Assembly (NCBI GenBank): GCA_026770705.1
Contig: JANJGN010000189.1
Span: 372,001-436,000, forward strand
DNA: 64,000 bases
Direction: 5' to 3'
DNA from: Isurus oxyrinchus
Lineage: Eukaryota
Numbering within the stretch: position 1 is the first letter of the stretch; each line of letters begins with the position of its first letter. Under the pieces are notes generated by a model, which saw nothing but the letters and a program-made list of their open reading frames with translations, made no database searches and had not been told where the DNA came from. Positions 6,638 to 63,442 of this stretch are shown here, piece after piece. A program made the position numbers and the translations under genes.

Positions 6638-6777
6638 TCAAACAGTCTGTCGACTTCCTTTCACTGTTTGTCTCTCCCAGACACAGACTCCAGCGATAGT
6701 GATAACCACAGCCACAAGGAATATCACAGCTCGTATTCCCAGGATCAGGATCACGTGCAGAATCTCTCCTCCACTGT
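6638..6777 (-). CDS. Transmembrane/terminal exon with intramembrane Arg: SGGEILHVILILGIRAVIFLVAVVITIAGVCVWERQTVKGSRQTV*
   Basis: ctctag acceptor, phase 1, hydrophobic span, TGA at 6640-6638; AATAAA at 5565-5560. Confidence 0.8.
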
Positions 6778-8451
6778 CTAGAGAACACACAGAAAGAAAT
6801 CATCACTGACTCTCCGCTTTCAATCTCTCACTCTGGCTGAACAATCAAGCTTCATATCACTGCAACATTTGCTGTAATATTGACCCATCCACTGGGATTC
6901 AATGTGGAATGAATGTTTTCATTGTAAACACTCTAAGAGTGGACAATCGGAACTTTCCCCTTAGCGTGGAACATTGGTGAGAATGGATCATTGTGCTGTT
7001 GGACTCCCTGTCCAATGTTTCTCTCCGTCGCTGTGTACAGGATTGTGCTGTAGAAAATTCTGGAAACGTTTAGTGCAGCGTGGAAATCCATCTCGGACGC
7101 GTGTGCGAATCGGGCAGGTTCGAGATGGACTCCCCCACGGACTTACACCCCCCGCTTAATAAACAGTTCCAATCTTTACCCAGAGAGAGGGGAGAATGTG
7201 GAACTCGCTCCCACTGTGAGTGATTGAGGTGAACAGTATCGATGTATTTAAGGGGCAGGAGGGTCGGTAACCAGAGGGACACAGATTGATGAACCGGAGG
7301 GGGAGATGAGGAGAATTTGTTTTGACAGAGCGAGTTGTTGTGATCTGGAAGGTGCTGCCTGAAAGGGCGGTGGAAGCAGATTCAATAGGAACTTTCAAAA
7401 GGGAAATTGGATAAACACTTGAAGGAGGAAGATGGGGGCAAAGTGGAGTGGTGGTTAGTGGATCTGATTGGATAGATCATTGAAAGACCTGGCACAGGCA
7501 CAATGGGCTGAATGGCCTCCTCCTGTGCTGTATCATTCTCTGCTTCCATTATCTCTCCCCCAGTCAGTAACCACTCCAGATCCCTCTTGAAGGTGACAGA
7601 GAATCAGCAACCACCACACCCACTGACAGCACATTACCGAGGATCCCTACTCTCTGGGAAAAGATGAAGTCCCCAACATCCAGCCTATTCCTGCTTCCCA
7701 GAGAGTGTAACCCTTCAGGGAGGCGCTGAGGAAGTTTTCAATAAAATGAGTTATCAAATCTACCATTTGAGAAATAATTTAATTCTGATGATCTCAATGC
7801 TTGTGGAGCAAACTGGGAAGTAGATTTGCTTGAAAAGCTGGGAAACACAAGGATTAAGTGCTACAATGCCACCACTGGTGGAAGGCTGTAACTACAGCGT
7901 GACGTTTACATAGGCAGTCATCATTATAAACAGGGGCATTGGACATATTGGGAATTATGTGCACGGAAATAGTGAGAACACGATGTAATCTTTTCACCAG
8001 CAAGAATTCTCGTACTAAACCTCTTCACCTCTGTTTTAATCTCAGATACACAAAAAAAATCACAGAATCAGATAAGGAGGAGTTGGGACTAGTTCTTCGT
8101 CAAAGGGTTAGGTTTCAGGTACCTCCTTAAAGGGAGAGAGAGAGAGTTGGAGAAGCAGATAGTATCTACGAGTGCCTCTATGCATCTGAGTGTTTGTACG
8201 AGTAATTTCCATATTCTTCCATAAATATGAATGGGAACACGAATCCCAGAATTCAGCCCACTCTCCAGTGCAGTACTGAGGGAGGTCAGGTAACCCATGA
8301 GGGAGTCTTGTGCCAGTGTGTTTGTTTGTGAGTGTGTCTTTGTGTGTGGTCATATATGTGTGTCTACACGTGTCTATTTAGGTCTGTATGTTTGAGGGTG
8401 TTTGTGTAGTGTTCGAATCTGTGAGAGATGTTGAAGTCTGTGTACACTCAC

Positions 8452-8600
8452 GTTCCACAGTGATGGTTATGAACCCCTCCACTGCTCCATGTTCATTCTC
8501 TGAACACATTGATAGTGTCCAGTGTCCCTGGATGTAACGTGAGGAATCACCAACCACAGCTCATTGTTGGAACTTGTTCTAATCATTGGGACGTTAAGAT
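8452..8600 (-). pseudogene. 3' half of a C2-set Ig exon; acceptor and 5' half replaced by ~185 bp of unrelated sequence
   Basis: Matches the 3' part of 34380-34661 with a 1-nt loss; intron homology resumes near 8790. Confidence 0.85.
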
Positions 8601-8926
8601 CTCAGGGCAGGAATCAAGAAGCCCGTTCGCACGATTACCAACAGAAAGTGAACAACAATTTATACTTAATGGGAAGAGAGTGCTGATTGGTTGGCAAGTG
8701 GTCTCTGATAGGTGGAGGTGTTGCCATGGAGAATACTGTGTGTGAGATGAAAAGTTTAGACAGCTTGTCTCTTCATTCAGCAATAATCATATAAAGATCA
8801 ATTAACTTCTATCGACTGTGAAGCACTTAGAGATTACTGAGAATGTGGATACTGAGAACGGGCTGCACTGTCAGAGGGTCAGCGCTGAGGGAGTGCTGAT
8901 GTAGAATGAAGAGTGTCCGTTCTTAC

Positions 8927-9223
8927 CTTGCACAGTTAGTACGAGGGTCCGCTCCGATGAAACAGATGGATATCTCACTCTGCAGCTGAGATTGTGTCCG
9001 TGGTGTTTGAGTGATGGGATCAGGGTCAGAACAGAAGTATAGGTCAGAGTGACACCATGCTGAGTTACAGTGTTTGAGACTGATCCAGGTACGTCAGTGG
9101 GAGTGTCCCAGGTTAAGACAGGTGCTGCTGTTCCATTGCACGTTGCGTTGAAGGTGCAGCTTACATCCACACGCTTTCCTGCAATAATTTCAGCAGGGAA
9201 TATCGTGGGTTTATCTGTGAAAT
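8927..9223 (-). CDS. Siglec-like domain-2 (C2-1) exon, open frame, 297 nt, phase 1-1
   Basis: DFTDKPTIFPAEIIAGKRVDVSCTFNATC...LSCRVRYP...VLTVQ; AG/GT boundaries. Confidence 0.9.
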
Positions 9224-9474
9224 CTAACAGACAGAGAATGGATCCTTTTAGAGAAATATAACGTGAAGCACCAGTTCAAATAGTTATCACAGTCCCACAA
9301 GAGAAAGCACTTTTACAAGGATGATATCAGAACTGAGAGGTTACAATGATCAGGAAAGATTTTCTTGCTCTTTGGCAGTAGTGTTTCTGTCTCTCAGCTT
9401 AATACACGTTCACTCCGAGACATGTGAATTGAGAACACTGGATGAGAGAAGAGGCTCAGACCAGAGATTGGAGT

Positions 9475-9610: not shown

Positions 9611-10081
9611 AAAGGTTTGAGTTCACTGGCTTCTCATTTCCTCAGTGATCTGGGTGATTTATCACCTTGTGGTTTGTTGGATCTTGCTGTGCACAAACTG
9701 CCTGCTGTGTTTAACATCTGTGACTACAATTCAGGAATAATTTCATTGGCTGTGAAGGGATTTGGCTCCTCCTGAGGTGGTAAATTGCGCTGCAGAAATG
9801 CACATCTTTCTTTTATCGATACGTCAGACTTTTAAACAGGACAGGAGAGATTGATGGGTGTGGTAACCTGATAATACAGTTAATGCTTTTCATCATTGAT
9901 ATTAAAGTGAGTATTAGACGTTGCTTTAGGACTGAACTGGAAGCTATCATCAGGTTATTGAGAATCAGACAGTGTGTTATAATAAGCTGTGTTTTGTGTT
10001 AATATGTAAACGTCACAGTTTGTGTTATTTCCCATTGAGTGTTGAATGTGAATTGTTGAGTAATTATAACACAGCACTTAC

Positions 10082-10300
10082 CAGAAACGTGAAGCTGGGT
10101 TACAGGATAGTAGCTGTAACTATTACTGCTGTCAAATTCTATTCTGAAAAAAATAAGGTCCTGCATCTTCCCGTCTGATGTTGTTTATAATCAGGGAACA
10201 GTCGCCATCTTTCAGGTCTCCAGACAGCCGGGTACGATGGCGGAATCTTTGATCCCTGTGACTGTGACCCTCGGAGTGAAAGGCTATAGACCATTTAGGC
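10082..10300 (-). pseudogene. 3' half of a Siglec V-set exon fused directly to promoter sequence; +1 T in a homopolymer before the essential Arg
   Basis: IAFHS...RTRLSGDLKDGDCSLIINNIRREDAGPY; 7 T versus 6 T in the 29.7-kb copy. Confidence 0.9.
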
Positions 10301-10500
10301 TGCTCCCTCTGTGTATTTAATTAGAAAGGGCTGATGTGTCTCTGTGAGACAAAATGAGGAAGTTGGTTCAAAGTGACAGAGCAGCTCATGTTTTGAGATG
10401 TTGGTGAACTGTTAACCCTTTGTGTCCTGACCCTGTGATGATATTTCTGCTCACAGGTGGACAGTCATTGACCAGGAATTTCTCCTGTGGGTCAGTGGGT
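10299..10500 (-). promoter_or_regulatory. Siglec-like promoter copy
   Basis: Reverse-complement homology to 27780-27974, including the Ets-like site. Confidence 0.65.
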
Positions 10501-12650: not shown

Positions 12651-12659
12651 TCTCATTAA

Positions 12660-12875: not shown

Positions 12876-13975
12876 TGCTCTCTTGTTCCTGTGTAGCAGG
12901 CTCGAGGGGGCTGAATGGCCTCCTCCTGTTCCTATTCAATGGGCAGTCAAAGCATGTGTCTGATTTTGGACATCGAACCCAATTCTGTCCTCAGGACACT
13001 GATAGAGGGAGAGACCAGTTATAGATCAATGCAGGAGGATTATTTATTTTCCCAATCTTTGATCCAAGCATCTCATCAAACACAGAGCGGAATACTGATC
13101 AAGGATGTTGGTCTCTGTAATCTGTAACACATCGCACAGTCCACCCATCCACTCAGCCTTCAGGATGGATGCTAAATGTACTCTCCAAGTGTGAAGGACT
13201 AAAATGGTGGTTTATTGCAGCTCTATCTCATTCTGTTATCAAAGCTGTCTCATCCATCCATGACATATTGAAGAAGATAAACCTGCAACCAATTTTTCAC
13301 ATCATAATTTCCAATGTTCATTGGCTATATCAATGTAAACATGTCACGTTGTACTGATGAACTCACATCATTGGTGGCACTGTAGCACATGTTATCTTCT
13401 AAGCTGCAGAGAATTTCTCAAATCTCCAATCAAATTGTATCCCAGATTGTTGTTCGTTTCGCTGTTTAACAATGAAGTGTAAAATCCAAATATATTTCTG
13501 AAAATACATTTGACTACAAAATGGTGTAAATTTTACCAATCTCCTCTGTTCCAATTATCCACCGATCCTGCATTTCCTGAAGTCTGCACTGGCTGATGAA
13601 TATTCTAAACACTGACAGACAGGAAGGTGAATAACAGAATGAAAATTAACTCTTAATCACGGACACGGGATTGAATTTGTCCGTTCTGTCCTGGTACATC
13701 ATCGAACGATATCTAAAGACATTTACAATCAGAATGGAGAGAAGGATGTTTCCAACAGTGAGGGACAATTCTGAAGGAGGATGTTCGAATTGAAACCCAC
13801 AGACAATCATCCTGGATAGATCATTCCGAAGAAATTCCATCAGATTGTAACAAGAGGTTTAAATCTATTTCCTGGGAGTGAGTACCTGTGGATATTAGGA
13901 AGGTAAATTGGAGTTTTGAATGATTCTCCCATTCTGTATTCTCCCCACACTGTGTGTGTCTCATTCTTGCTCAGT

Positions 13976-14092
13976 TTATAAATTCCCATAAACAGAATCC
14001 TTGGCAAAAGTACAGTTTGCGTAAAGATCATCATCTGTATCAGGATTGACTCCGCGGTTAGATTTCATTTCCAGATCCTTCTCATCTTTCTT
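13976..14092 (-). CDS. Terminal cytoplasmic exon with Tyr motifs: KKDEKDLEMKSNRGVNPDTDDDLYANCTFAKDSVYGNL*
   Basis: ttctattacag acceptor, phase 0, ITIM-like SVYGNL; AATAAA at 13048-13043 conserved in the paralogue. Confidence 0.8.
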   Translation of the reverse strand, partial: KKDEKDLEMKSNRGVNPDTDDDLYANCTFAKDSVYGNL

Positions 14093-14179
14093 CTGTAATA
14101 GAAACAGAAATGATCAGAGTGACAATCAGTGTTTAGTATTATTGATCCAAATCGAAAATTCCACCCACAATACATACAT

Positions 14180-15305
14180 TAATTATTGACACTGAACAGG
14201 GTTTGATTATTGATTCTGAACGGGGTTTGATTATTGATTCTGAACAAGGTTTGAATATTGACACTGAATGGGGTTTGATTATTGATACTGAACAGGGTTT
14301 GATTATTGATACTGAACGGGGTTTGATTATTGATATTGAACGGGGTTCGATTATTGATACTGAACGGGGTTTGATTATTGATACTGAACGGGGTTTGATT
14401 ATTGATACTGAATGGGATTTGTTTATTGATTCTGAACGGGGTTCGATTATTGATACTGAACGGGGTTTGATTATTGATACTGAACGGGGTTTGATTATTA
14501 ATACTGAACGGGGTTTGATTATTGTTACTGAATGGGGTTTGATTATTGACACTGAACGGGGGTTGATTATTGATACTGAACGGGGTTTGATTATTGATAC
14601 TGAACGGGGGTTGATTATTGATACTGATCGGGGGTTGATTATTGATACTGAACGGGGTTTGATTATTGAAACTGTACGGGGTTTGATTATTGATTATGAA
14701 CGGGTTTTGATTATTGATACTGAACGGGGTTTGATTATTGACACTGAACGGTGTTTGATTATTGATTCTGAACGGGGTTTGATTATTGATACTGTACGGG
14801 GTTTGATTATTGATTATGAACGGGTTTTGATTATTGATACTGAACGGGGTTTGATTATTGATTATGAACGGGTTTTGATTATTGACACTGAACAGGGTTT
14901 GATTATTTATACTGAACGGTGTTTGATTATTGATCCTGAACGGAGTTTGATTATTGATCCTGAAAGGGGTTTGATTATTGATACTGAACTGGGTTTGATT
15001 ATTGATACTGAACTGGGTTTGATTATTGATTCTGAAAGGAGTTTGATTATTGATACTGAATGGGGTTTGATTATTGACATTGAACGGGGTTTGATTATTG
15101 ATTCTAAACGGTGTTTGATTATTGAACCTGAACGGAGTTTGATTATTGATACTGAACGGGGTTTGTTTATTGATTCTGAACAGTGTTTGATTATTGATTC
15201 TGAAAGGGGTTTGATTATTGATACTGAACGGGGTTTGATTATTGATTCTGAACGGGGTTTGATTATTGATTCTGATCGGGGTTTGATTATTGATTCTGAA
15301 CGGTG
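14180..15305. repeat. 24-bp intronic minisatellite (CGGGGTTTGATTATTGATACTGAA), about 46 units
   Basis: Tandem units; 8-aa periodic ORFs. Confidence 0.95.
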
Positions 15306-15436: not shown

Positions 15437-15541
15437 CTGATTCCTCAAAGCCCAACCACGCTCACAGTTTTCATAAACAGGACCTCGATATTCATCAACA
15501 CGATGGTTCGATTTGATTCCTGCTTTCACCTCGCCTCTCTT
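15437..15541 (-). CDS. Putative cytoplasmic exon KRGEVKAGIKSNHRVDEYRGPVYENCERGWALRNQ (phase 0-0)
   Basis: Acceptor context paralogous to the terminal exon; VYENC motif; CAG|gtgagt donor. Confidence 0.6.
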
Positions 15542-15889: not shown

Positions 15890-16325
15890 GAAAGATGTTC
15901 TGTACAACAGACCTGAGCCTCACACCCAGATCTCAATAATCTGTAGAAATCTTTCAAAGGCATCAATCATTGGAATCTGATTATATATAAAGTCACAACA
16001 TTAACAAAGGACGGTGTTGGTGGTGGAAGTGAATTCCAATCGTTCCGTTACTTACCCAGTACCTGTCCGACTGCTCGCCTGGGGAGGAACTGCCCATACG
16101 CTCTGCTTGGGCTGAATGACCTCTTCCTGTGCTGCTCCCTCTGTGTGTTTAATGAGAAAGGGTTGATGTGTCTCTGTGAATCAAATCAGGAATTGGGGAA
16201 CAATTGTGAAAACCCTTTCATTGAAACGTAGGGCCTTAGTGTTGTGTTGTAAACAAACTGTTAACCCTTTGTGTCCTGACTCTGTGTCGTGATTCCTGTG
16301 TAAAGCTGAGCAGTCGTTGAGCGAG
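15890..16325 (-). promoter_or_regulatory. Misplaced promoter/exon-1/intron-1 copy lying between TM and tail exons
   Basis: Homologous to about 27800-28215; donor after 16056. Confidence 0.7.
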
Positions 16326-16792: not shown

Positions 16793-16889
16793 TTTCTCAC
16801 ACACTTGAAGATGAAGAATCCACTCAGTCCAACACTCAAACAGATTCCAGCTCCAAGCAATCCTGCTTTCCATTCATTGGAATCTCGCC
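16793..16889 (-). CDS. TM exon with uncharged core: RDSNEWKAGLLGAGICLSVGLSGFFIFKCVRK (97 nt, phase 1-2)
   Basis: ttttacag and gtaagt boundaries; homologous to 62386-62482. Confidence 0.85.
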
Positions 16890-18155: not shown

Positions 18156-18437
18156 GTTCCACAGTGATGGTTATGAACCCCTCCACTGCTCCATGTTCAT
18201 TCTCTGCCACACACTGATATTCTCCAGTGTCCCTGGATGTAACGTGAGGAATCACCAACCACAGCTCATTGTTGGAACTTGTTCTGTTCATTGGGACATT
18301 AAGATGTTGCCACGTCAGGTTAGAAGCTGGGAAGCTCTCGACAGAGCAGATTATCACTGCAGAATTCCCCTCAATTATATTGATTGATGAAGCGTTAATC
18401 ATATCAAGAGAATTAATTGAGAGATTCTGTGGTGTGT
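18156..18437 (-). CDS. C2-set Ig exon (282 nt, phase 1-1)
   Basis: IICSVESFPASNLTW...DTGEYQCVAENEHG; AG/GT boundaries. Confidence 0.92.
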
Positions 18438-21519: not shown

Positions 21520-22680
21520 TCGAGGGGCTGAATGGCCTGCTCCTGTTCCTGTGTAATGGGATTGAGGGGGCTGAATGGGCCCCTCATGTTCATGGGTAAC
21601 AGGCTCAAGGGGTTGAACGGCCTCCTCCTTTTCTTTTGTTACAAGCTCGATGGCTGAATGGGCCTCCTCCTGTTCCTGTGTAACAGGCTCGAGGAGCTGA
21701 ATGGGCCTCCTCCTGTTCATGTGTAACAGGCTCGAGGGGCTGAATGAGCCTCCTCCTGTTCCTGTGTAACAGGCTCGAGGGGGCTGAATGGCCTCCTCCT
21801 GTTCCTGTGTAACAGGCTCGAGGGGGCTGAATGGGCCTCCTCCTGTTCCTGTGTAACAGGCTTCAGGGGGCTGAATGGGCCTCCTCCTGTTCCTGTGTCA
21901 CAGGCTTGAGGAGCTGAATGGGCCTCCTCCTGTTCCTGTGTAACAGGCTCGAGGGGGCTGAATGGCCTCCTCCTGTTCCTGTGTAACAGGCTTCAGGGGG
22001 CTGAATGGGCCTCCTCCTGTTCCTGTGTAACAGGCTCGAGGGGGCTGAATGGGCCTCCTCCTGTTCCTGTGTAACAGGCTCGAGGGGGCTGAATGGCCTC
22101 CTCCTGTTCCTGTGTAATAGGCTCGAGGGGGCTGAATGGCCTCCTCCTGTTGCTGTGTAACAGGCTCGAGGGGGCTGAATGGGCCTCCTCCTGTTCCTGT
22201 GCAACAGGCTTCAGGGGGCTGAATGGGCCTCCTCCTGTTCCTGTGTAACAGGCTCGAGGGGGCTGAATGGCCTCCTCCTGTTCCTGTGTAACAGGCTCGA
22301 GGGGGCTTAATTGCCTCCTTCTGTTCCTGTGTAACAGGCTCATGGGGCTGAATGGGCCTCCTCCTGTTCCTGTGTAACAGGCTCAAGGGGCTGAATGGGC
22401 GTCCTCCTGTTCCTGTGTAACAGACTCGAGGCAGCTGAATGGGCCTCCTCCTGTTGCTGTGTAACAGGCTCGAGGGGCTGAATGGGCCTCCTCCTGTTCC
22501 TGTGTAACAGGCTTGAGGGGCTGAATGGGCCTCCTCCTGTTCCTGTGTAACAGGCTCGAGGGGGCTGAATGGGCCTCCTCCTGTTCCTGTGTAACAGGCT
22601 CGAGGGGCTGAATGGGCCTCCTCCTGTTGCTGTGTAACAGGCTTCAGGGGGCTGAATGGGCCTCCTCCTTTCTTCTGTGT
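21520..22680. repeat. ~44-bp minisatellite, about 26 units
   Basis: Tandem units. Confidence 0.95.
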
Positions 22681-23760
22681 AAATGGCCAGTCCAAAGGAT
22701 GTGTTTGATGCTGGGGTTAATGGCCTCCAACACAATCCTGTCCTCACATGATTAACTTAGTTAGTGACTGGTTACTGGTTAATGCAGGAGGATTATTTAT
22801 TTTCCCAATCTTTTATCCATGTGTCTGGTTAGGATCTTTTCATCAAACACAGAGCAGAACCAGGATCGAGGATGTTGGTGTCTGAAATCTGTAACACATC
22901 GCACAGTCCACCCATTCACTCAGCCTTCAGGATGGAGGCTAATTGTTCTTTCAGAAACTGAAAGACTGAAATGGTTGTAAGTTGTAGCTTTAGCTCATTC
23001 TGTTGTCCAAGCTGTTTCAGCCATCCAGGATACAGTGAAAAACGTACATTTGCAAGCAACTTTTCACATCATAGCTCCCTCTGTTCACAATGACATTGGC
23101 AACATCAATGTAAACATGTCACGCTGTAATGACATCCTCCCACCAGTGCTGGCACCGTAGCACACCTGTTTTCCTCTGTGTTGTCGGAAGTCTACCAATT
23201 CTCCAATCAAATTGTTTCCCTTTCCCAGGCTGCGATTAGTCTAATATTAAACAATAACTCATAAAATACACATGTTCTCTGAACATATGTTTGACTGCAA
23301 AATGGTGAATAAACTGTAGGGATTTGCTCTGGTCCAATTATCCACCGATCCTGCATTTCCTGAAGTCTGCACTGGCTGATGAATATTCTGTAAACACTGA
23401 CAGACAGGAAGGTGAATAACAGAATGAAAATTAACTCATAATCACGGACACGGGATTGAATTTGTCCGTTCTGTCCTGGTACATCATCGAACGATATCTA
23501 AAGACATTTACAATCAGAATGGAGAGAAGGATGTTTCCAACAGTGAGGGACAAATCTGAAGGAGGATGTTCGAATTGAAACCCACAGACAATCATCCTGG
23601 ATAGATCATTCCGAAGAAATTCCATCAGATTGTAACAAGAGGTTTAAATCTATTTCCTGGGAGTGAGTTCCTGTGGATATTAGGAAGGTAAATTGGAGTT
23701 TTGAATGATTCTCCCATTCTGTATTCTCCCCACACTGTGTGTGTCTCATTCTTGCTCAGT

Positions 23761-23877
23761 TTATAAATTCCCATAAACAGAATCCTTGGCAAAATCACAG
23801 TTTGCGTAAAGATCATCATCTGTATCAGGATTGACTCCGCGGTTAGATTTCATTTCCAGAACATTTTCATCTTTCTT
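23761..23877 (-). CDS. Orphan terminal cytoplasmic exon KKDENVLEMKSNRGVNPDTDDDLYANCDFAKDSVYGNL*
   Basis: Near-identical to 13976-14092 (offset 9785 bp) with its 3' UTR; AATAAA at 22801-22796. Confidence 0.8.
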   Translation of the reverse strand, partial: KKDENVLEMKSNRGVNPDTDDDLYANCDFAKDSVYGNL

Positions 23878-23986
23878 CTGTAATAGAAACAGAAATGATC
23901 AGAGTGACATTCAGAGTGATCAGTGTTTAGTATTATTGATCCAAATCGAAAATTCCACCCACAATACATACATTAATTATTGATAC

Positions 23987-26900
23987 TGTTGGATGCTGGT
24001 CACGAGTTTGTTGGGACTTATGGATCCAGGCTTGTTTTGGAGAGGCTGAGTAGGTACAATAGACAGAGTAGATCAGCAGACAGTTCTTAGATGAAACACA
24101 TTCTGCTTATTTACAAAGGAACTCAGCAGCTACACTTGTGTGCTTTCAACTCAAGCCCTGTCTCCGCATTACAGGCTCTAACTAAAGGTGACCGACTACT
24201 GAGGTACCTGCGCCACTCGTCTGTTGGACACTGATATAAGAGTTAAACAGGGACTTCTATTAGTGAAAACCAAAGGTCAGCAGAATTCTCCAGGTGAATC
24301 TTGTGCACCATGGGGCTGACATCAGCAGAACTCTCCAGAAAGGCCTTGAAGATCACGAGGGATTAACTCGAGAACAGACATAAAGAGATTCTGAGGGTAA
24401 ACAGATCAGGTAAAGGCAAACAGCACCAGGCTAGAATGAGATAAACAGTTCTTGCTTGGGTAAGGAGCAGATATGTACCTGGGACTGGGAACAACTGCTT
24501 ATTATGTGATTATGTACTGACAAGATTTGAATTTAAATAACCCAATGTGTACGTGACTAACACTGTGAACAAAAAAGATGGTTTCCCTGTAATGGGTAGA
24601 GTTCTGTTTTTAGCCAGGCCTGAGGTTGATTCTGAGAACACACCACAACACTGAGCTCATGTTATCTTCCATTGTAACCTTCTTCTTAAAGGTACATCAC
24701 ACATCAGATTACCACCACCCTCCCCCTTTACTCAGAAATACATTTTACACTTACTTTTACCATTTTCTCAAAGTATCAGATGATTTACACAGATCAGTAA
24801 TTTACAAATTCAGTCTTTCTGGGGGGTTTCCTTATGCGTCTGGAACGTCTCAGATCCACAGCTTCAGATACTTTGTCAGGAGTCTCCTTTTCTGATGTTG
24901 TCCCAACACCAGCTTCTTCGGTGGACACCTGCAAACCTGTTTCCTCAACTCTTGCAGGTACAACGGACCCTTCAGACACATCTGTTCTCAGCTGAGTTCT
25001 TTCAACAGGAGACATAGACGCAGCCGTGAAGACTGGTGGGATTGTTTCTTGGTACTTTGTTTCTCTCCTCCTTATATGACCCACATGTCTCCATATGACT
25101 CGGTCTTCCACTTTCACATGGTGAGAAAGAGTTCCAATCGCTGCATTTATTTCACCCGGTGACCACTTTGGCCGTTCTCTAAAATCGTTCACATATACCG
25201 TCTCTCCTACGGTCAGCTTCCTGTCATGACTATGCCAGTCATGTCCAGTTTCCTGTCTTCCGGGACTCCTTTCCACCTTCCCGCTGACATTTAGCATGAC
25301 TGATGTTGCAAATGTGACGTGAGAAAAAACTTTTTCACACAACTAAGTTTTGGGCCTGGAATGCACGGCCTGGAAGTGTTGTGGAGGCAGGTTCAATCGA
25401 GGCATTCAGGAGGGCATTAGATGATTATTTGGATAGAGAAAAGGTGCAGGGGCACGGGGAAAGGCAGGGCAATGACACTAGGTCATGATGCTCATTTGGA
25501 GAGCTGGGATAGACACGATGGGCTGAATGGCCTCCTGCTGTGCCATTAAGACTCTGTGATCCTGCAGAGGAGACTCTGAAAGGCAAACCGGTTTATTGAT
25601 ACAACCCTTTGTGTGTATTAATTGTGACAAACTTCTGGGAGGCCTTCTCGAACTCCAATTGTTGATAAGCATGGCTCATATCAGCTCCGTGTAGGCCGTT
25701 CCAGTCAATTCTTGTCATCTCCACAAACACTTTGGCCAGGCTCAGGTCCAGGGACTATTGGTGCTGCCCATTCTGAGGACAGCACAGATTGTATCCCTCC
25801 CAGTTTCTAGAACCTGCCCAATTCAGCATCTGCCTTTTCCCACATTGCATAAGGTACTGGCCGTGCCTTCATAAATCAGAGGGGTAGAGTCTGGATCCAC
25901 ATGAATTTTTGCTTGCAGCCCCTGGATCTCCCCGAGTTCATCTTGGAAAACTGAGATGTATTTTTGTAGTAGCTCAGGTAGCCCACTGGCTCTCAGTTGG
26001 AAGATCTCAGACCAATCCAGTTTAATATCTTTCAGCCAGTTTCGTCCAAGGAGGCTTGGTCCCTCACCAGCTCCCATCATCAAGGGTCATTTTACTGATT
26101 GACTTCCATACTGTATAACAACCCTGCTTATGTCTTTGGCTTGAATGTCTTCTCCCGTGTGAGTTTTCAATTAGTCATCTGTTTCTTCCAAATTTAATTG
26201 ACTTTCCCCATGATTCCAGTATTTGAAAGTATGCTCACCAATTAGCGTAATGTTAGCTCCTGTGTCCACCCCCATTCTGAGAGCTCTATCATTCACCCTC
26301 ACTGTTACATAGATTGGCTCTGTTCTTCCTACCTTTAAATTATACAATGAATAACTATCTGAATCTGTTACTTCAGGCTCTTCTATGTTATGGATCTCAC
26401 AGGGTTTTCTCTCTTGATTGAAACTCTGCCTGATTCTATCCTTGCAATCTCTCATGGGCTCTCTGTTTCGATGACAGTAAAAACAATTGATTTTTTTAAA
26501 GTTCCATTCACTACGAGGTTGTCTGCTTCACCTCTGTTCACATTATTCCATGTTTTCTCTGCTAAGTCATTCCTTTTTATTTGCTGCTAGTGGTGGACGT
26601 TTCCCGTTTCTCATCAGAGCTGTACATTTTCCCGCACTTCTTGGCTGAGGCTCCTCACCCAACATGAGGACGGTGACATTTTGCACTCTCCATATGTTTT
26701 TCGAGTCCCTCACTGCTCTTTCCATAGCCAGCACTATTCCCAGAGCTTTCTGAATATCCAAATCTGTTTCAGACAGTAATCTCTTCTGAATCGAATCTTC
26801 ATTTATACTGCACACCAGTTGATCTCTCAGCATATCATTTATAGATTTACCAAACTCACAATGTCCTGTTAACTGTTTCAGACTTTCCACATAACATGCA

Positions 26901-28457: not shown

Positions 28458-28539
28458 AGTTTGAGAGTCAGAAGCTAAAGGAATATCTGGGAGTGGACAA
28501 TAATTGGGAAATATTACTGCCTCCTGTCACTTCTCCAAG
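28458..28539 (+). pseudogene. Leader exon with ATG replaced by ATA (28500-28502): (I)IGKYYCLLSLLQ
   Basis: Aligns without gaps to 3413-3332. Confidence 0.75.
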
Positions 28540-29404: not shown

Positions 29405-29773
29405 TTGGACTGTCACAAGAGTGGAAAGGTGAAACTCCACGAGAGGTGACAGCGCAGGAAGGTTCGTGTGTACAGATTCCATGTCATTACAGTTATCCAT
29501 CGTGTCTGGAAAACCAACCGCGAGGTGGAGTCTGGTTTAATAATGAGGAACAGATTCCCTGGGCTCCCATTGCCTTTCACTCCAAGGATCACAGTCACGA
29601 GTTACCACGGTTCCACCATCGGACCCGGCTGTCTGGAGACCTGAAAGATGGCGACTGTTCCCTGATTATAAACAACATCAGACGGGAAGATGCAGGACCT
29701 TATTTTTTCAGAATAGAATTTGACAATGGTCCGAGCCATAACTATTACCCTGTAACCCAGCTTCACGTTTCTG
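29405..29773 (+). CDS. Siglec V-set exon (369 nt, phase 1-1) with essential Arg
   Basis: QEWK, GSCVQIPC, GDCSL and EDAGPYFFRIE: Siglec-type Cys pattern and F-strand Arg. Confidence 0.93.
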
Positions 29774-31088: not shown

Positions 31089-31385
31089 ATTTCACAGATA
31101 AACCCACGATATTCCCTGCTGAAATTATTGCAGGAAAGCGTGTGGATGTAAGCTGCACCTTCAACACAACGTGCAATGGAACAGCAGCACCTGTCTTAAC
31201 CTGGGACACTCCCACTGACGTACCTGGATCAGTCTCAAACACTGTAACTCAGCATGGTGTCACTCTGACCTATACTTCTGTTCTGACCCTGATCCCATCA
31301 CTCAAACACCACGGACACACTCTCAGCTGCAGAGTGAGATATCCATCTGTTTCATCGGAGCGGACCCTCGTACTGACTGTGCTAT
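31089..31385 (+). CDS. Siglec-like domain-2 (C2-1) exon
   Basis: 297 nt, phase 1-1; extra Cys consistent with the V-C2 interdomain disulfide. Confidence 0.92.
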
Positions 31386-31554
31386 GTAAGTACAAACACC
31401 CTTCAATCTACATTAGCTGGAATAGTATCAAATGTGCACAGCAAGCTCCCACATACTGCACTTTGTTTATAAACAAACCATTGGTATTTAACTGGTAAAA
31501 AGTGAGCCCTGACAGGCAGTACATCCTTACTACTGACTCTCCGATAGTGCATCA

Positions 31555-33300: not shown

Positions 33301-33369
33301 CTTGAGTCTATGAGTTCACTGGTTGAGTAAATTCGAATTGCACTCCTTCATATACACTTGTTAGTTGAT

Positions 33370-34379: not shown

Positions 34380-34661
34380 ACGCACCACGGAATCTCTCAA
34401 TTACTTCTCCAGATATGATTAACGCTTCATCGATCAATATAATTGAGGGGAATTCTGCAGTGATAATCTGCTCTGTCGAGAGCTTCCCAGCTTCTAACCT
34501 GACGTGGCGACATCTTAATGTCCCAATGAACAGAACAAGTTCCAACAATGAGCTGTGGTTGGTGATTCCTCACGTTACATCCAGGGATACTGGAGAATAT
34601 CAGTGTGTGGCAGAGAATGAACATGGAGCAGTGGAGGGATTCATAACCATCACTGTGGAAT
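34380..34661 (+). CDS. C2-set Ig exon (282 nt) with four N-glycosylation sequons
   Basis: NLS, NAS, NLT, NRT; canonical Cys/Trp; AG/GT boundaries. Confidence 0.93.
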
Positions 34662-36366: not shown

Positions 36367-36551
36367 ACAGTGGAGGAGAGATTCTGCATGTGATCCTGAT
36401 CCTGGGAATACGAGCTGTGATTTTCCTTGTGGCTGTGGTTATCACTATCTTCTGGAGTCTGTGTCTGGGAGAGACAAACAGTGAAAGGAAGTCGACAGAC
36501 TGTTTGAAGCTTTGTACAGCAACAATCTGGTCAGTCAGTGCGGACAAATAA
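36367..36551 (+). CDS. Arg-containing TM/terminal exon SGGEILHVILILGIRAVIFLVAVVITIFWSLCLG...SADK*
   Basis: ctctag acceptor, phase 1; AATAAA at 37586-37591. Confidence 0.8.
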
Positions 36552-43727: not shown

Positions 43728-43844
43728 CTAATATCTACAGCAGATACCACAAGTCTCATTTGGTTCTCTCCAATTACAGCAGTGACAGCAGAATCTGCAG
43801 AGCTGCTGTCTGCTCATTCTGTTCTGGCGCTGCAGCAAGGAGCC
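43728..43844 (-). CDS. HAMP: Hepcidin-like exon 3: GSLLQRQNR|MSRQQLCRFCCHCCNWREPNETCGICCRY*
   Basis: cttttccag acceptor, phase 0, RxxR site, C-xx-CC-x-CC-xn-CG-x-CC-xx-stop pattern. Confidence 0.93.
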   Translation of the reverse strand, partial: GSLLQRQNRMSRQQLCRFCCHCCNWREPNETCGICCRY

Positions 43845-43949
43845 CTGGAAAAGCAGGAGCACAATAGGTGAGAACATTCCGGAAAGAAAGAAGGCACCGC
43901 CTCCCTTTGACTCTGGCATCATTTCAATCAGGCGCGTCATTGGAAGGAG

Positions 43950-54065: not shown

Positions 54066-55131
54066 TCCTCCAGTGAAACATTTCAGAGCAGCTGAGCTTG
54101 GTTTTCTGGAACCAGTCTCGGCCCAGAAGACTAGGGCCCTCACCTGTCGCTATGATCACTGGAAGCTGGGCTGTCTGCTGCCTGTAGGACACAGGTACTG
54201 GGATGAGGTCCTTTCCCTGTATGGATTCTCCAGTGTGTGTCTTCAGCTGATCCATTGTTGGCTCTAAATTCAGCGTCTGGGTTCCTTCATTTAGCTGTTT
54301 AAATGTGGGCTCTTCCACCACTGTGTCTGAGGCTCCCGTATCTGCCCCATTACTAGTGGCTGCCCATTCACTTGGGTTGTGATGGTTATAGGTTCAGTTT
54401 TTACCACTGTGACATTGGACAGGGAATAGACATCGGTATCAGCAGCTTCAGGCTCTGTGATATTATTCACTTCCATCATGTTGGTGCACTGCCTGATGGG
54501 CTGTCTCTATTTCACCCTGCATTGCTTTATTACCCGCCCCTTTCTTGTGGCAGTGATGGCATTCTGCCCCCTTGAACCTGCAGGTGTCCAGTACGTGCTC
54601 AATGCCCCCCACATCGAGAACAGGCCAACTTCGGAGTTGCTGCTGAAATACTCCCACGAAGCCTTTTAGTTTCTGGAGCGGCAGAGACTGTCTCTCGCTT
54701 GGCGGCTGTCTCTCTCTCTCTCTCTCTCTCCAGTTTGAGCCTCACGCCCGGTGGTTGTTTCCTGTCCCAGCTGAGGACTGGCGCCATGTTGTACATCCTG
54801 TAAATCCCGCCAGTCTCTCCCAGCACTTTCCATGCCTGGCGCTATTTCCATAGTGCGCTTCAAATCGATGTCGGCTTCTGCGAGTAAACGGCTCTGAATG
54901 GCGTTGGGGTGAACGACACAAACCAATCGGCCCCGCAACATGTCATTGAGTGTGTCTCCGAGGTCCCAGTGCTCAGTCACCTGCTTCCACTTCACTGTAT
55001 AGGTTGCGATGGACTCTCCCTGGGCCCTTACTCTGGAGTTAAACTTAAACCTCTGCATTATTACCCACGGCTTCAGCTGAAAACACATCTTCATGAGGTC
55101 GACTAATTGGTGAAAAGATTTAGAATTGGGT
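54066..55131 (-). mobile_element. Gypsy gag/zinc-knuckle/protease remnant
   Basis: NDMLRGRLVC, CHHCHKKG, PSLLGRDWF; related to 25.8-27.1 kb. Confidence 0.85.
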
Positions 55132-55421
55132 GTAATACACGTCACTGTCTTCAGCTCTGAGACTGTCAATCCTCACTGAACAATTCTTCCCTTCCAAGTC
55201 GCCGATTATTTTAGCACGTCCCACGAATGTGGCCATCCCATAATTGGGATCTTTGGTGTATGTGATGGTATATTTCCATCTATACCAATATTTATACCAA
55301 GCTCCGTGCAGTGCTGTGTAAGAGTGGGAAGGAAAGTCAAAGCTACACGGAATAACCACACAAGAGCTGCTGATGGCCCTCTGAGGCAGCGCCTTCATAG
55401 ACCATCCCTCTGACGTCACTC
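55132..55421 (-). pseudogene. Divergent MAG/sialoadhesin-like V-set exon truncated after EDSDVYY
   Basis: SCVVIPCSFDFP, HGAWY, GRAKIIGDLEGKNCSV; ctttcag acceptor, phase 1. Confidence 0.85.
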
Positions 55422-58409: not shown

Positions 58410-58445
<36 letters not shown>

Positions 58446-59148: not shown

Positions 59149-59430
59149 ATGCTCCACAGAATCTCACATTTACTTCTCTTGAAATGATTAATGCTTCATC
59201 GATCAATATAATTGAGGGGAATTCTGCAGTGATAATCTGCTCTGTCGAGAGCTTCCCAGCTTCTAACCTGACGTGGCGACATCTTAATGTCCCAATGAAC
59301 AGAACAAGTTGCAACAATGAGCTGTGGTTGGTGATTCCTCACGTTACATCCAGGGACACTGGAGACTATCAGTGTGTGGCAGAGAATGAACATGGAGCAG
59401 TGGAGGGATACATCACCATCACTGTGGAAC
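59149..59430 (+). CDS. C2-set Ig exon, tandem copy 1
   Basis: 282 nt, open frame, phase 1-1. Confidence 0.92.
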
Positions 59431-59653
59431 GTGAGTGTACACAGACTTCAACATCTCTCACACACACATTCACACATGCAAAAAAACTCATGTGTAGACA
59501 CAAACATGCACGCTTACACACAAACATACGTTCAAACACATACACAGAAACACACACAAACTCAACTCACACATACAAACATTCATGCGCACACAAAGAC
59601 ACACACATGCACACACACTCCCACAAGCACAGACATACAGACATACACACACA

Positions 59654-59688
<35 letters not shown>

Positions 59689-60190
59689 GTCCACACATGT
59701 GCTGACAGACACGCGCATACACACAAATACAAACTCACGTGCAGAAGTACACACACAAGTGTGAGCTCCCTCTCCTCTCTCAGTTCTGCACTGGAGTCTC
59801 GGTGTCAGCTCCCATTCTGTGCTGAAGGAAGGTAAACTCCAGATCAGCAAGACCCTGAATTGGATGAGCAACCTCCTGAACAGAGAAATGTAGATTTAGC
59901 CCTCAGTGCTCCATCGATCAAATACAATCCATTGCCTATCAAGCCCTTGGGGACATCTTGAGAGTGTTAAAGGATGTTTCTTTCATTCTAGAGGGTTAGC
60001 AACTCTACTGGTGGGAGGAAGCAACTGCAGTGTGACAGTTTACATAGGAAGTGTCCATTATAAATATGACAGTAATTTTTCATGAGGGAAGGTACCTGGA
60101 AAAGCATTCCAACATCAGATACAGAGAGATGATGCATGGAGTCTTGCTGTGCACTATGCTTGCTCACATTAAAATCTTTATTTCTTTTAG

Positions 60191-60471
60191 ACGCACCCAG
60201 AATCTCTCAATTAATTCTCTTGATATGATTAACGTTTCATCGATCAATATAATTGAGGGGAATTCTGCAGTGATAATCTGCTCTGTCGAGAGCTTCCCTG
60301 CTTCTAACCTGACGTGGCGACATCTTAATGTCCCAATGAACAGAACAAGTTCCAACAATGAGCTGTGGTTGGTGTTTCCTCACGTTACATCCAGGGACAC
60401 TGGAGACTATCAGTGTGTGGCAGAGAATGAACATGGAGCAGTGGAGGGATTCATCACCATCACTGTGGAAC
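60191..60471 (+). pseudogene. C2-set Ig exon, tandem copy 2, with a 1-nt deletion (281 nt)
   Basis: ACGCACCCAGAAT versus the (AC)GCACCACAGAAT consensus of the other copies; spliced frame stops after 12 codons. Confidence 0.8.
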
Positions 60472-60529
60472 GTGAGTTACTGCAAACTCCAACATCACTC
60501 ACACACGCACACACACACACACACACACA

Positions 60530-60569
<40 letters not shown>

Positions 60570-61286
60570 TACACAGACACACACACACACTGACAGAAAC
60601 CTGTAGGCACACACATGCATAATTATCCACACACAGTCATACACATACAAGCACATACACAGGAAAATACACACCCATCTCAAACACACACACACATTCA
60701 TGCCCACACATAGACACACATATGCACAAACTCTCACTCATGGACAGACCTAGACACACAGACACATGCGCATGCGCACACACAGACACATGTGTGCATA
60801 CACACACAAACACACTCACATGTGCAGAAACACAAACACACAGATACACACACGTGAGTTCCCTCTCCTCTCTCAGTGCCGCACTGGAGTCTTGGTATCA
60901 GCTCCGATTCTGTGTTGAAGGAAGGTAAACTCCAGATCAACAAGACCCTGAATTGGATGAGCAACCTCCTGAACAGAGAATTGTAGATTTACCCCTCAGA
61001 GCTCCATCGATCAAATACAATTCATTGCCTGTCCAGCCCTTTGCGAAATCCTGAGGATGTGAAAGCAAGCTTCTTTCATTCTAGATGGACAACACCTCTA
61101 CTGGTGGGAGAATGCAACTGCAGTGTGACAGTTTACATAGGCAGTGTCCATTAAAAATGTGGCATAAGACGTTATCCTGAGGGAAGTTACCTGGAAATGC
61201 ATTCAGACATCAGATACAGAGAGATGATGCATGGTGTCTTGCTGTGCAATAGGTTTGCTCACATTAAACACTTGATTTGTTTTTAG

Positions 61287-61568
61287 ATGCACCACAGGAT
61301 CTCTCATTTACTTCGCTTAATATGATTTACGCTTCATCAATCAATATAATTGAGGGGAATTCTACAATGATAATCTGCTCTGTCGAGAGCTTCCCAGCTT
61401 CTACCCTGACGTGGCGACATCTTAATGTCCCAATGAACAGAACAAGTTCCAACAATGAGCTGTGGTTGGTGATTCCTCACGTTACATCCAGGGACACTGG
61501 AGACTATCAGTGTGTGGCAGAGAATGAACATGGAGCAGTGGAGGGGTTCGTAACCATCACTGTGGAAC
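61287..61568 (+). CDS. C2-set Ig exon, tandem copy 3
   Basis: 282 nt, open frame, phase 1-1. Confidence 0.92.
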
Positions 61569-62385
61569 GTGAGTGTGGAGATACATTTGTTTGTTTGTTG
61601 TCTCCGTGGTCTCCGTGGAGCCATTGGGATCGTGTTGTTTTTAATCCAGTTTTCTTCAATCCTCGCTCAGTCCACGTTATCCACACACCCAATTTTTCCT
61701 CTCCCTTTCTGTTTTTGCTCTCAGTTTCTCCTTCAATGGTTGTGAGGACAAGGCTGTCAGGTCTTCGTTTCCAATCTCCATACTTGACGACCTTTCGCTC
61801 TCTAACTGTCCTGAACAACCCTTTTAATTGCTGAACTTCTCATTCTTTAATTGATAAATATTATATATAAATGTTACATGGATTACTTTGAAATGCAACA
61901 CCTGTATTCATAAATTGCTTAGAAATTACTAAACATTCAACAGCCAATGAAGCATTATCGAAGTGAGCTCACTGTTGTAATGTAGGAAACACAGGTACTG
62001 ATTTGTGCACAGCAAGATCCCGCAAACCACCGTGTGATAATGACCTGATAGTCGATTATTTCAGTGAGGTTGGTTGTTACATGTGTAGAGACTACATACC
62101 CTTTAGGGAGGGAAGCATGTCTCGATGGGGATGTGACTCCAGTCTCAGACACCAACATGGTTAACTCTTACCTGCCCTCTGAACTGGTCTCCCAGTTTGG
62201 GACAAACCAGTGGTTCAGGAGGAAGACCCCCCACCACCTTCTCAAGGGGAAACTAGGGATGGACAATAAATGTCAGCATTGCCCGAGAATGAGTATTTAA
62301 ACATTGAGTGAGTGTATCGCTTCTCGAGATACATCGGAGCATCATTGTAAACCTGTAGTGCAGTAATTAATGGCTGTTTTTACAG

Positions 62386-62482
62386 GTAGAGACTCCAGTA
62401 AATGGACAGTAGGATTGTTCACGGCTGGGATCATGTTGAGTGTTTTCCTGGCTGGAATCTTCATCTTCATCTGTGTGAGAAA
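62386..62482 (+). CDS. Uncharged TM exon RRDSSKWTVGLFTAGIMLSVFLAGIFIFICVRK
   Basis: ttttacag and gtaagt boundaries, 97 nt, phase 1-2. Confidence 0.88.
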
Positions 62483-63360
62483 GTAAGTCTGAAGATTTAA
62501 CTTGATTTTAATATAAACATTTGCTTCAATGTTCTTTCCTTAAGTCGGTGATTGTTTCCCTTGGGATCAGCACCAGGTCCCTCTCTGTAAGTGATCCCTG
62601 TGTCCACTCTGATCCGGAGAGAACCTTTCATTGTCCTGTATCCAGGTAAACAATCACGAGACCCAGAGATTCCTCACTCTGCACGATTACTCCGGGATAA
62701 ATATTTGCTTCAATGTTCTTTCCTTAAGTCGGTGATTGTTTCCCTTGTGTTAAGCGCTAGATGCCTCTCCGTAACTGGTCTCTGTTGTCCCTTACGATCC
62801 AGACAGTGTTTTTCATTGCCCGTTATCCAGATGAATAATAATCAGTTGCTGTGATCTGGAAGGTGCTGCCTGAAAGGGCGCTGGAAGCAGATTTAATAGG
62901 ATCTTTCAAAAGGGGAATTGGATAAATACTTGAAGGGGGAACATTTGAAGGGCTATGGGGGGAAGAGCAGAGGTGGAGGGGGGGTCAAAGATATGGCGTG
63001 TCATTATAATGATATTATACCTTAGGCTTATTTATTGTACAAGAAACAAAGCACCAATCGCTCACAGGGATTGGGTGAGAATGTTAATGATTTGTTTATC
63101 AAGACTCGGCACGAGAACAGTTATACATATGGAGAAAGATTGAAGGCATCAGAGCTGTGAGTGTGTGCTCTGCTCAAAGCAAAAGTCAAACTAAGATTGG
63201 ATCACATGACACACTTCCATTATAGTGATGTCACGCTGATATCCCTTATTGGAACTAGAGATAGTCCAGTCGTTGGTGTAAGGTTACACTGGGCTCTGTG
63301 TCTGTGCTGCACTGACTCTCTGCTATATGATAACCACAGTGTGATATTGTGTTATTGCAG

Positions 63361-63442
63361 GAGAAAGACAGCGATGGAGGAGAGAGTTTCAGGGACCAGT
63401 GACATTGTATTGACCCCCAGTCCACTCTCTGTGAAGCACCAG
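63361..63442 (+). CDS. First cytoplasmic exon RKTAMEERVSGTSDIVLTPSPLSVKHQ; gene probably continues beyond the window
   Basis: ttgcag acceptor, phase 2-0, CAG|gtacag donor. Confidence 0.7.

Follow-up and report, generated by a model that had tools for sequence, protein, structure and literature searches.

The paired Siglecs of mammals are the closest described counterparts of the receptor genes considered below. In human Siglec-5/-14 and Siglec-11/-16, nearly identical ectodomains are mounted either on a tail with an immunoreceptor tyrosine-based inhibitory motif (ITIM) or on a short tail that follows a transmembrane (TM) segment with a basic residue. Siglec-14, -15 and -16 need DAP12, DAP10 or FcR-gamma, engaged through that basic residue (PMC7226832, PMC8198044); in Siglec-15 it is a lysine, which binds DAP12/DAP10 (PMC7226832). 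The similarity of Siglec-5 and Siglec-14 is maintained by concerted evolution (PMC8198044; Angata 2006 as cited in PMC2915791). The pairing of Siglecs is interpreted as the host's response to pathogens disguised by sialic acid, and such pairs have so far been described mainly in mammals; fish are credited with only Siglec-1, CD22, MAG and Siglec-15, and with no CD33-related Siglecs, a statement based on teleosts (PMC7226832). A search of one literature library found no paper describing Siglecs of sharks or other cartilaginous fish or their pairing, and none dedicated to DAP12 in cartilaginous fish. The DNA analyzed here, 64 kb from Isurus oxyrinchus (contig JANJGN010000189.1, positions 372,001 to 436,000; "the window" is this whole 64-kb stretch, and all positions are counted from its first letter), is gap-free vertebrate DNA, rich in minisatellites and retroelement fragments, that holds exons of Siglec-like receptors.

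The window is probably a slice of a large, fast-turning-over cluster of shark Siglec-like genes in which shared ectodomain exons are combined with three different signaling ends, with mostly the wreckage of that cluster lying in these 64 kb. A member of the family would consist of a leader, at least one Siglec-type V-set exon, one C2a exon and C2b exons in varying number, followed by one of three ends: 1) the Arg-TM end, a terminal exon that places an arginine in mid-membrane and has a short tail of ~12-18 residues, none of them tyrosine, presumably signaling through a separate ITAM-bearing adaptor (ITAM, immunoreceptor tyrosine-based activation motif); 2) a type I TM segment and a long tail that carries an ITIM and, distal to it, TEYxxI, presumably inhibitory and common to tetrapod Siglecs; 3) a type II TM segment and three small exons ending in YxN[CWF]-x6-7-YxN[ILVM]-COOH, for which the direction of signaling is ambiguous. 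The same ligand-binding face on different ends would deliver opposite signals, as in Siglec-5 and Siglec-14. What the window itself contains is the parts list of the family, mostly broken or partial, and not a working pair: no complete activating/inhibitory pair of intact genes is found within the 64 kb, because one activating-type gene (B) has lost its ATGs and acquired an extra T in its tail, its copy (A') is a pseudogene, 5' exons are missing from the type I unit and from the type II unit, and the second C2b exon of the type I unit is frameshifted.

Siglec-like exons of the window

Six-frame reading, tblastn (with exons of the window itself and shark homologues as queries) and manual inspection of splice sites served to map the exons, and all exon limits were re-checked for AG/GT sites and phase. 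Every modelled exon has AG/GT splice sites and compatible phases, and all immunoglobulin (Ig) exons are phase 1-1.

Gene B, on the + strand at 28.5-36.6 kb, comprises leader, V-set, C2a, C2b and Arg-TM terminal exons. The leader exon (28500..28539; translation IIGKYYCLLSLLQ, with a GT donor) is defective: aligned with an intact leader exon of the window (3371-3332), it has ATA in place of the start ATG and an in-frame TAA seven codons upstream; an alternative upstream ATG (the start of a RefSeq isoform) has become AAG, and both ATGs are gone. The three Ig exons are intact by splice sites and domain matches: a Siglec-type V-set exon, phase 1-1 (29405..29773; Pfam and PDB), a C2a exon (C2-set_2; 31089..31385, 297 nt; Pfam PF08205, 5e-8) and a C2b exon (Ig_3/I-set; 34380..34661, 282 nt; Pfam, 8e-13). 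Together they keep 948 nt of Ig exon sequence open, and their splice sites are perfect. The coding part of the terminal exon (36367..36551) specifies the TM segment ILHVILILGIRAVIFLVAVVITI. Its arginine stands ~11 residues into a hydrophobic stretch of ~29 residues, which is followed in this type of end by a short, basic, tyrosine-free tail; adaptor-coupled receptors are classically built in this way, with an arginine in mid-membrane and very little tail, and the Arg-TM form is predicted to couple to an adaptor. An extra T at 36450/51 shifts the tail of gene B into another frame (FWSLCLGETNSERKS...ADK and a stop), yielding 33 residues, still without tyrosine, as compared with the family-typical ending AGVCVWERQTVKGSRQTV. 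Gene B can be read as a nearly intact, putatively activating gene without a start codon and with a shifted tail.

Is this a Siglec? Pfam finds V-set (1e-11) and Ig_CD22, the CD22-type first Ig domain (1e-8), in the V exon of gene B. When it is compared with all solved structures, the best 17 PDB matches are all Siglecs, with E values of 7e-16 to 1e-11, in the order Siglec-5 (7e-16), Siglec-8, Siglec-7, CD33, MAG, Siglec-10, sialoadhesin; MAG, at 2e-13, is close enough to Siglec-5 that the CD33 type is favored only slightly. Against Siglec-15 and PILR the values are 5e-8 and 6e-4, respectively. The essential arginine of the F strand is in place (YFFRIE of gene B aligned on YFFRVE of Siglec-5 and YFFRLE of Siglec-8), and the motif G.Y.FR[IV] is retained in most elasmobranch homologues. 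The cysteines follow the Siglec pattern: SCVQIPC and DCSLII of gene B fall on LCVLVPC and NCSLSI of Siglec-5, the F strand (YFFR) is free of cysteine, and a cysteine pair, CTFNTTC, is found in C2a. Siglec-type disulfides are predicted on this pattern for the V and C2a domains of gene B, and V domains of its type would be expected to bind sialic acid. Chance does not account for these matches: E values of the Ig exons range from 1e-8 to 1e-16 against Pfam and the Siglecs of the PDB, and the Arg-TM module recurs in the RefSeq models of other sharks.

A HMMER search of 1.84 billion representatives returned 1318 matches. Those that match most closely are RefSeq models of Carcharodon, Cetorhinus, Scyliorhinus, Chiloscyllium, Stegostoma and Pristis, which carry the names Siglec-8, -10, -12, -13, -14, CD33-like and MAG-like; outside the elasmobranchs, turtles, frogs and bony fishes supply the next relatives, again models of Siglec type. 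One exon of Carcharodon XP_041037179, 20 residues long, is identical to window positions 3393-3334.

Copy A', on the - strand from 10.4 to 4.8 kb, is an inverted copy of gene B, ~88% identical to it, and is a pseudogene. Its V-set pseudo-exon (9999..10428, identified by tblastn and frame translations) has a degenerate or lost 5' half, a stop, and a frameshift placed exactly between YFF and R. The C2a exon (8927..9223) is open and 98.3% identical to that of gene B; the C2b pseudo-exon (8447..8826) has several stops and a frameshift. The Arg-TM terminal exon (6638..6777) is open and in the family-typical frame: it reads SGGEILHVILILGIRAVIFLVAVVITIAGVCVWERQTVKGSRQTV, ends in AGVCVWERQTVKGSRQTV before its stop, and agrees with the C-termini of four homologue models (P0006, P0023, P0078 and P0160).

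The type II unit (18437-13976, - strand) consists of five consecutive open exons with intact splice sites: a C2b exon (18156..18437; Pfam), a 97-nt uncharged TM exon, phase 1 to 2 (16793..16889; RDSNEWKAGLLGAGICLSVGLSGFFIFKCVR), which is 97% identical to the TM of Carcharodon XP_041037180, a first cytoplasmic exon, cyt1 (16056..16140; GSSTGRGHSAQAERMGSSSPGEQSDRYW; found by tblastn with homologue P0017 and by its splice sites), tail exon 1 (15437..15541, phase 0-0), which contains VYENC and ends in DEYRGPVYENCERGWALRNQ, and the terminal tail exon 2 (13976..14092), with LYANC and a C-terminal SVYGNL, which ends in DDLYANCTFAKDSVYGNL and a stop. (A donor of the TM exon at tgt/gtgaga, phase 0, leading directly to tail exon 1, was rejected when P0017 exposed cyt1, which fits the stronger phase 2 donor, aa/gtaagt, of the same TM exon.) A second copy of tail exon 2, with the same LYANC and C-terminal SVYGNL (23761..23877, - strand; ending in DLYANCDFAKDSVYGNL and a stop), is an orphan; it belongs to a stretch of 1.3 kb that is directly duplicated (12880-14194 / 22621-23988). 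Upstream of the type II unit, on its strand in the window, no leader, V or C2a exon was found by tblastn with window exons and ten shark homologues, by a scan for Ig signatures or by a scan for leader motifs; only satellites, the orphan tail exon and a retroelement are located there.

Three additional copies of the type II cyt1 exon (SSTGRGHSAQAERVGSSSPGEQSDRSW) are found at 27957-28049 (+), 11002-10937 (-) and 3914-3822 (-). The gtaagt donor is preserved in all three; the acceptor survives as well in the two that are full-length, at 27.9 and 3.9 kb, each of which is followed ~0.45 kb downstream by a leader exon. The third, at 11.0 kb, is situated ~0.5 kb upstream of the V remnant of A', and a search for a leader exon there found none. 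Ahead of each activating-type gene, the duplicated unit thus bears a relic of the tail of a gene of presumed inhibitory type.

Unit C (59149-63442, + strand) runs past the end of the window. It has three tandem C2b exons, of which the first (59149..59430; Pfam, splice sites) and third (61287..61568) are intact; the second (60191..60471, 281 nt) has suffered a 1-nt deletion near its 5' end and is out of frame with its splice sites. These are followed by the type I uncharged TM exon (62386..62482, 97 nt; RDSSKWTVGLFTAGIMLSVFLAGIFIFICVR), which agrees with the TMs of homologues P0003, P0013, P0016 and P0018, and by a type I cyt1 exon (63361..63442; RKTAMEERVSGTSDIVLTPSPLSVKHQ; tblastn with P0013, splice sites). 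The ITIM/TEY exons of unit C would lie beyond the window. On the + strand in the window, tblastn and the scans for Ig signatures and leader motifs found no leader, V or C2a exon of its own. The TM exons of types I and II have the same length, 97 nt, and the same phases, and are only 75% identical in DNA.

Two further Siglec-like exons stand alone. The intact leader exon at 3332..3371 (-), MIGKSYFLLSLLQ, belongs to another gene, which extends beyond the left end of the window. The N-terminus of Carcharodon XP_041037179 (isoform X2), MKYLGVDNDREILLPPVTSP, corresponds to the same exon (3393-3334, -) read in another frame, from a point 22 nt upstream of the start of MIGKSYFLLSLLQ; that isoform may be an artefact of modelling. 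The second is an orphan V-set exon, sialoadhesin/MAG-like (55120..55421, -; PDB sialoadhesin 1e-10; Pfam V-set 3e-5 at 24.6 bits, under the Pfam cut-off of 26 bits), which is interrupted at its F strand by a gag-like open reading frame of a retroelement; glutamine replaces the essential arginine, and a stop follows.

The inventory drawn up in an earlier note on this DNA, made by reading the letters alone, largely stands. All the exons that it listed are in their places, with AG/GT sites and matching phases, including the tyrosine-free Arg-TM terminal exons at 6.7 and 36.4 kb (the tail of the latter, that of gene B, being frameshifted). It was right to call the genes Siglec-like, by structure and Pfam matches, essential arginine and cysteine pattern alike, and to place the host among cartilaginous fish: the nearest proteins are shark RefSeq models, and the exon identity with Carcharodon makes the host probably lamniform. 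Some details have had to be amended. The C2 exons, described as near-identical, include five C2b exons that are indeed 93.6-96.8% identical, but the C2b exon that precedes the 6.7 kb Arg-TM is full of stops and 60191-60471 is out of frame. The uncharged TMs at 16.8 and 62.4 kb are both present, but represent two types rather than one. The motifs VYENC (15.5 kb), LYANC (14.0 kb) and SVYGNL (23.8 kb) are present as well, but LYANC and SVYGNL share a single exon, of which there is one copy at 14.0 kb and another at 23.8 kb. Two cytoplasmic exons, 16140-16056 (-) and 63361-63442 (+), had been overlooked.

Splicing and proposed exchange of the ends

RNA contigs from four runs were placed on positions 30900-36700 only, that is, on gene B from C2a to the 3' untranslated region (UTR), and the joints come from three studies. 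In all four runs, depth over exons far exceeds depth over introns; in run X5 it is 213, 649 and 217 over C2a, C2b and Arg-TM, respectively, vs. 0-7 over most unique intron bins. Contigs begin at 31088, over the C2a exon of gene B, with 0 mismatches, and extend to 36700 as 3' UTR. Exact exon-exon junctions stand in three contigs. Those of runs X1 and X5 join a C2a exon, with an end of the A' type (GTGCAAG), directly to 36367 (the joint was placed at 31382/36365 with one letter between, which is equivalent to a junction at 36367). In run X8, a 674-nt contig joins the end of C2b to 36367 and continues into the 3' UTR, the shorter arm of the joint being 152 letters long; the final C2b base of this contig is C, as in the paralogs, vs. 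T in gene B. At the level of the family, the Arg-TM exon is spliced to C2 exons. Contigs of X1 and X5 also join the end of a C2b exon back to the start of a C2b exon (34382-34661); tandem-C2b transcripts are therefore expressed from paralogues.

The gene models of other sharks tell the same story. Shark RefSeq models close with Arg-TM (P0006, P0023, P0078 and P0160, the module being seen in catshark and bamboo shark) or with a tail of type I or type II. P0006 is laid out as V-V-C2b-C2b-ArgTM, with P0023 similar; in P0078 and P0160, C2a leads directly to Arg-TM. All four terminate in ...LGIRA...AG[IV]CV.E..TVKGS(RQTV). The Arg-TM module occurs in lamniform, carcharhiniform and orectolobiform sharks. 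(A word-index search with the 48-residue Arg-TM region of P0006 returned only P0006 itself and one S. torazame model, and is too insensitive to gauge the spread of the module.)

How alike are the ectodomain exons that precede these different ends? C2b exons beside Arg-TM, type I and type II TMs are 94-97% identical in DNA; the introns that flank the five C2b exons (93.6-96.8% identical among themselves) are 47-87% identical, and the exon differences are mostly non-synonymous (5-12, vs. 1-4 synonymous). The contrast between exon and flank, and the predominance of non-synonymous differences, fit exon-limited gene conversion better than plain purifying selection, and conversion of this kind is most likely what keeps the ectodomain exons alike. 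In a maximum-likelihood tree of 43 V domains, which has only three non-shark outgroups, those of elasmobranchs form one clade (support 98/97) in which the types of end are intermixed, six label changes being needed where the minimum is two. The V domain of gene B is 88% identical to a type I-linked V domain of Cetorhinus, vs. 63-77% (catshark) and 59% (bamboo shark) for V domains linked to Arg-TM. The catshark V domains of P0001 (ITIM) and P0006 (Arg-TM) are sisters (100/99 and 100/98).

The two uncharged ends differ in what their tails might do. Tails of the type I homologues (P0003, P0013, P0016, P0018) read LLYA[NS]INFSKLPS...TEYA[QL]IRFQ.N, and the same two motifs are found in the same order and at the same near-C-terminal site in a turtle (P0034, DLHYASVDFSK...TEYSEIRLK) and in mammals (P0027, P0057, ELHYASFIFQ...TEYSEIKIRR). 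This layout is common to the tetrapod Siglecs, and the inhibitory arm therefore looks inherited from a common ancestor. The type II tail of the window reads DEYRGPVYENC...DDLYANCTFAKDSVYGNL and a stop, and its ending, YxN[CWF]-x6-7-YxN[ILVM]-COOH, is kept in P0007, P0017, P0025, P0028 and P0037 as well as in both copies of the window. Its two tyrosines have the spacing of an ITAM, and each stands in a YxN context, the preference of the Grb2 SH2 domain. Within this pair, the terminal SVYGNL is one motif of ITIM consensus. The type II tail is ambiguous as to inhibition: the ITAM-like spacing and the YxN context of both tyrosines make the inhibitory label uncertain. The terminal S/A-[IV]-Y-x-N-[ILVM] itself matches the ITIM consensus quoted in PMC7226832.

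The larger proposals of the earlier note can be judged in this light. Joints in RNA contigs and gene models bear out its expectation that the Arg-TM exon is spliced to C2 exons, and the intermixed labels of the V tree agree with its interchangeable ends on related ectodomains, in both cases for the family only. The paired family that it proposed likewise holds at family level, but the window has no complete pair (B and A' have lesions, and the type I and II units are incomplete). Independent evolution of the system is acceptable for the Arg-TM module, which would be a separate invention, but not for the inhibitory arm, since type I tails are laid out as in turtle and mammal. Its ITIM-like tail does end in an SVYGNL that fits the ITIM consensus, but as half of an ITAM-spaced YxN pair.

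Satellites, retroelements and a hepcidin neighbor

Much of the space between the exons is occupied by repeats. A 33-bp minisatellite recurs throughout the cluster in both orientations, giving rise to false open reading frames of up to 449 residues with VLHCQRVSTEG or STDPLTVQHSL; it is found at 4.2-5.2, 10.4-10.9, 18.6-19.2, 20.15-21.5, 33.9-34.25, 37.9-38.5, 44.3-44.7, 46.7-47.1, 57.9-58.2 and 63.6-63.9 kb, and is a likely substrate for rearrangements in the window. Further satellite families are found at 11.97-12.65, 21.5-22.7 and 53.2-53.8 kb. An array with an estimated period of ~24 bp (14.18-15.31 kb) fills the intron between type II tail exons 1 and 2, and two large, mutually inverted arrays occupy 47.2-48.65 and 51.3-53.06 kb. 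Retroelement fragments are located at 24.8-27.05 kb (-), 31.6-33.1 kb, 40.4-41.1 kb (-) and 54.06-55.17 kb (-); they contain gag/protease/integrase-like open reading frames without a Pfam match, and RVT_1 at 31927-32331 and 40369-40743. One retroelement is inserted in the C2a-C2b intron of gene B, and another is the element that interrupts the V exon at 55 kb.

AATAAA is found ~1.05 kb past the Arg-TM stop in both B (37586-37591, +) and A' (5565-5560, -) and is a candidate for a shared polyadenylation signal; the hexamer is ~3 times commoner in the window than in shuffles.

The cluster also encloses a last exon of hepcidin type, CRFCCHCCNWREPNETCGICCRY (43728-43970, -; Pfam Hepcidin 1.1e-6, above the curated cut-off). 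CD22 presumably adjoins HAMP and MAG in mammals. HAMP and MAG share one human locus on chromosome 19 (PMC4453067). The position of the shark cluster beside hepcidin fits conserved linkage with the mammalian HAMP-MAG region, and suggests a relation to the MAG/CD22 region.

Alternative explanations and known systems

Several points weigh against a cluster of shared ectodomains with exchangeable ends, or at any rate against reading it from this window. Every contig over the Arg-TM exon of gene B differs from it by 6-11 mismatches and by the T at 36450/51, which is missing from all RNA contigs in the four runs; none of the contigs over 30900-36700 is specific to gene B. These contigs therefore come from paralogues or orthologues, and not demonstrably from gene B. 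The runs were labelled "RNA?" by guess, their RNA nature being deduced from the exact exon-exon joints. The ATA and the extra T of gene B could be assembly errors or alleles, and the type I and type II units could lack 5' exons through mis-assembly around satellite arrays, not through real truncation. The tree supports several separate origins or exchanges of ends only weakly, and its starred branches are compatible with a single origin of Arg-TM.

Might the whole window be "merely" dead debris of duplication, with its exons alike only because segments were duplicated recently? There is no shortage of corpses: A' is dead, B has no start codons and a shifted tail, the second C2b of unit C is frameshifted, and the 55-kb V exon is cut by a retroelement; both units with uncharged TMs have lost their 5' exons, and the gaps are filled by satellites and retroelements. 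Yet the type II unit retains its five consecutive open exons and their splice sites, gene B retains 948 nt of open Ig exons while its equally old copy (~12% diverged) has accumulated many stops, unit C extends past the window, and recent duplication of whole segments does not explain C2b exons that are 94-97% identical between flanks that cannot be aligned. We consider this explanation unlikely.

A second alternative, to which we give somewhat less credence still, is that the ends do not divide simply into activating and inhibitory: the type II tail would serve activation or endocytosis, as an ITAM-like or Grb2-recruiting signal, and the Arg-TM form might be a decoy or the associate of some other membrane protein. 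The ITAM spacing and the double YxN (of Grb2 SH2 type), kept in five homologue models and both window copies, speak for such a role, and only the last motif, at the very C-terminus, fits the ITIM consensus. However, position +3 of the first motif is occupied by C, W or F, and not by the L or I that tandem SH2 kinases favor; the terminal S/A-[IV]-Y-x-N-[ILVM] does conform to ITIM consensus (PMC7226832); and a mid-membrane arginine with a very short tail is built for adaptor coupling in the manner of Siglec-14, -15 and -16 (PMC7226832). The weakest alternative, one long gene in which the 5' exons of B are spliced either to Arg-TM at 36.4 kb or, by reading through, to unit C at 59-63+ kb, and which would thereby make activating and inhibitory isoforms with the same binding domain from a single locus, could draw on the want of a leader, V and C2a in unit C (the only upstream + strand set being that of gene B), on the compatible phase 1-1 of all Ig exons and on the C2b-C2b joints of the RNA contigs, but is very improbable in that it requires a 24.5 kb intron across the hepcidin gene and an opposite-strand V pseudo-exon, that homologous RefSeq models put the two ends in separate genes, that the leader of gene B has no ATG, and that no consistent joint leads out of 34661 beyond 30900-36700, save C2b-like sequence explicable by paralogues.

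The damaged slice of a shark Siglec-like cluster with shared ectodomain exons and three ends remains the preferred reading. A more ambitious version of it is tentative: a three-way shark Siglec system with ends sharing conversion-homogenized exons, its CD33-type tail and pairing logic dating from the base of the jawed vertebrates, and its type II ending an undescribed Siglec motif. If that were true, the CD33-type inhibitory tail and pairing would predate what the teleost-based claim that fish lack CD33-related Siglecs allows, and the shark cluster would offer a natural series of exon swaps for studying the exchange of signaling ends. The weight of this particular window is limited: most of its copies are damaged or incomplete, and automatic annotation of sharks already includes the family, the same modules being found in the RefSeq annotation of at least six elasmobranchs.

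How does the cluster compare with known systems? With Siglec-5/-14 and -11/-16 it shares the likeness of ectodomains on different ends: the V and C2 exons of different shark ends are 88-97% alike, and exons are far more similar than introns. It differs in that the mammalian pairs arose within mammals, that sharks have three ends, not two, and that the partners in the window are incomplete. The shark Arg-TM module would be a separate and older invention than the mammalian pairs, since it is common to lamniform, carcharhiniform and orectolobiform sharks. CD33-related tetrapod Siglecs, which have an ITIM and a membrane-distal TEYSEI/V, resemble the shark receptors in their tails (LLYANINF ... TEYAQIRF in type I, with the same motifs, spacing and C-terminal site) and in that the V domain of gene B scores best against Siglec-5, -8, -7 and CD33, but the elasmobranch V domains form a clade of their own. 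Siglec-15 is also of activating type, with a basic TM residue, and occurs in fish and mammals (PMC7226832); it is set apart by a weaker V match (5e-8), whereas the shark form has Arg, not Lys, a tail of ~18 residues and the layout V-C2a-(C2b)n. The RefSeq shark models (XP_072326180 of S. torazame, "Siglec-12"; XP_072409577 of C. punctatum, "Siglec-13"; XP_041037179/80 of C. carcharias, "CD33-like") have the same modules and three ends, but are predictions with borrowed mammalian names. The KIR, LILR, PILR and CEACAM1/3 receptors belong to different V-domain families, and present the same design: a shared ectodomain, opposite signaling, and repeated independent origin (PMC5112662, for CEACAM in Xenopus).

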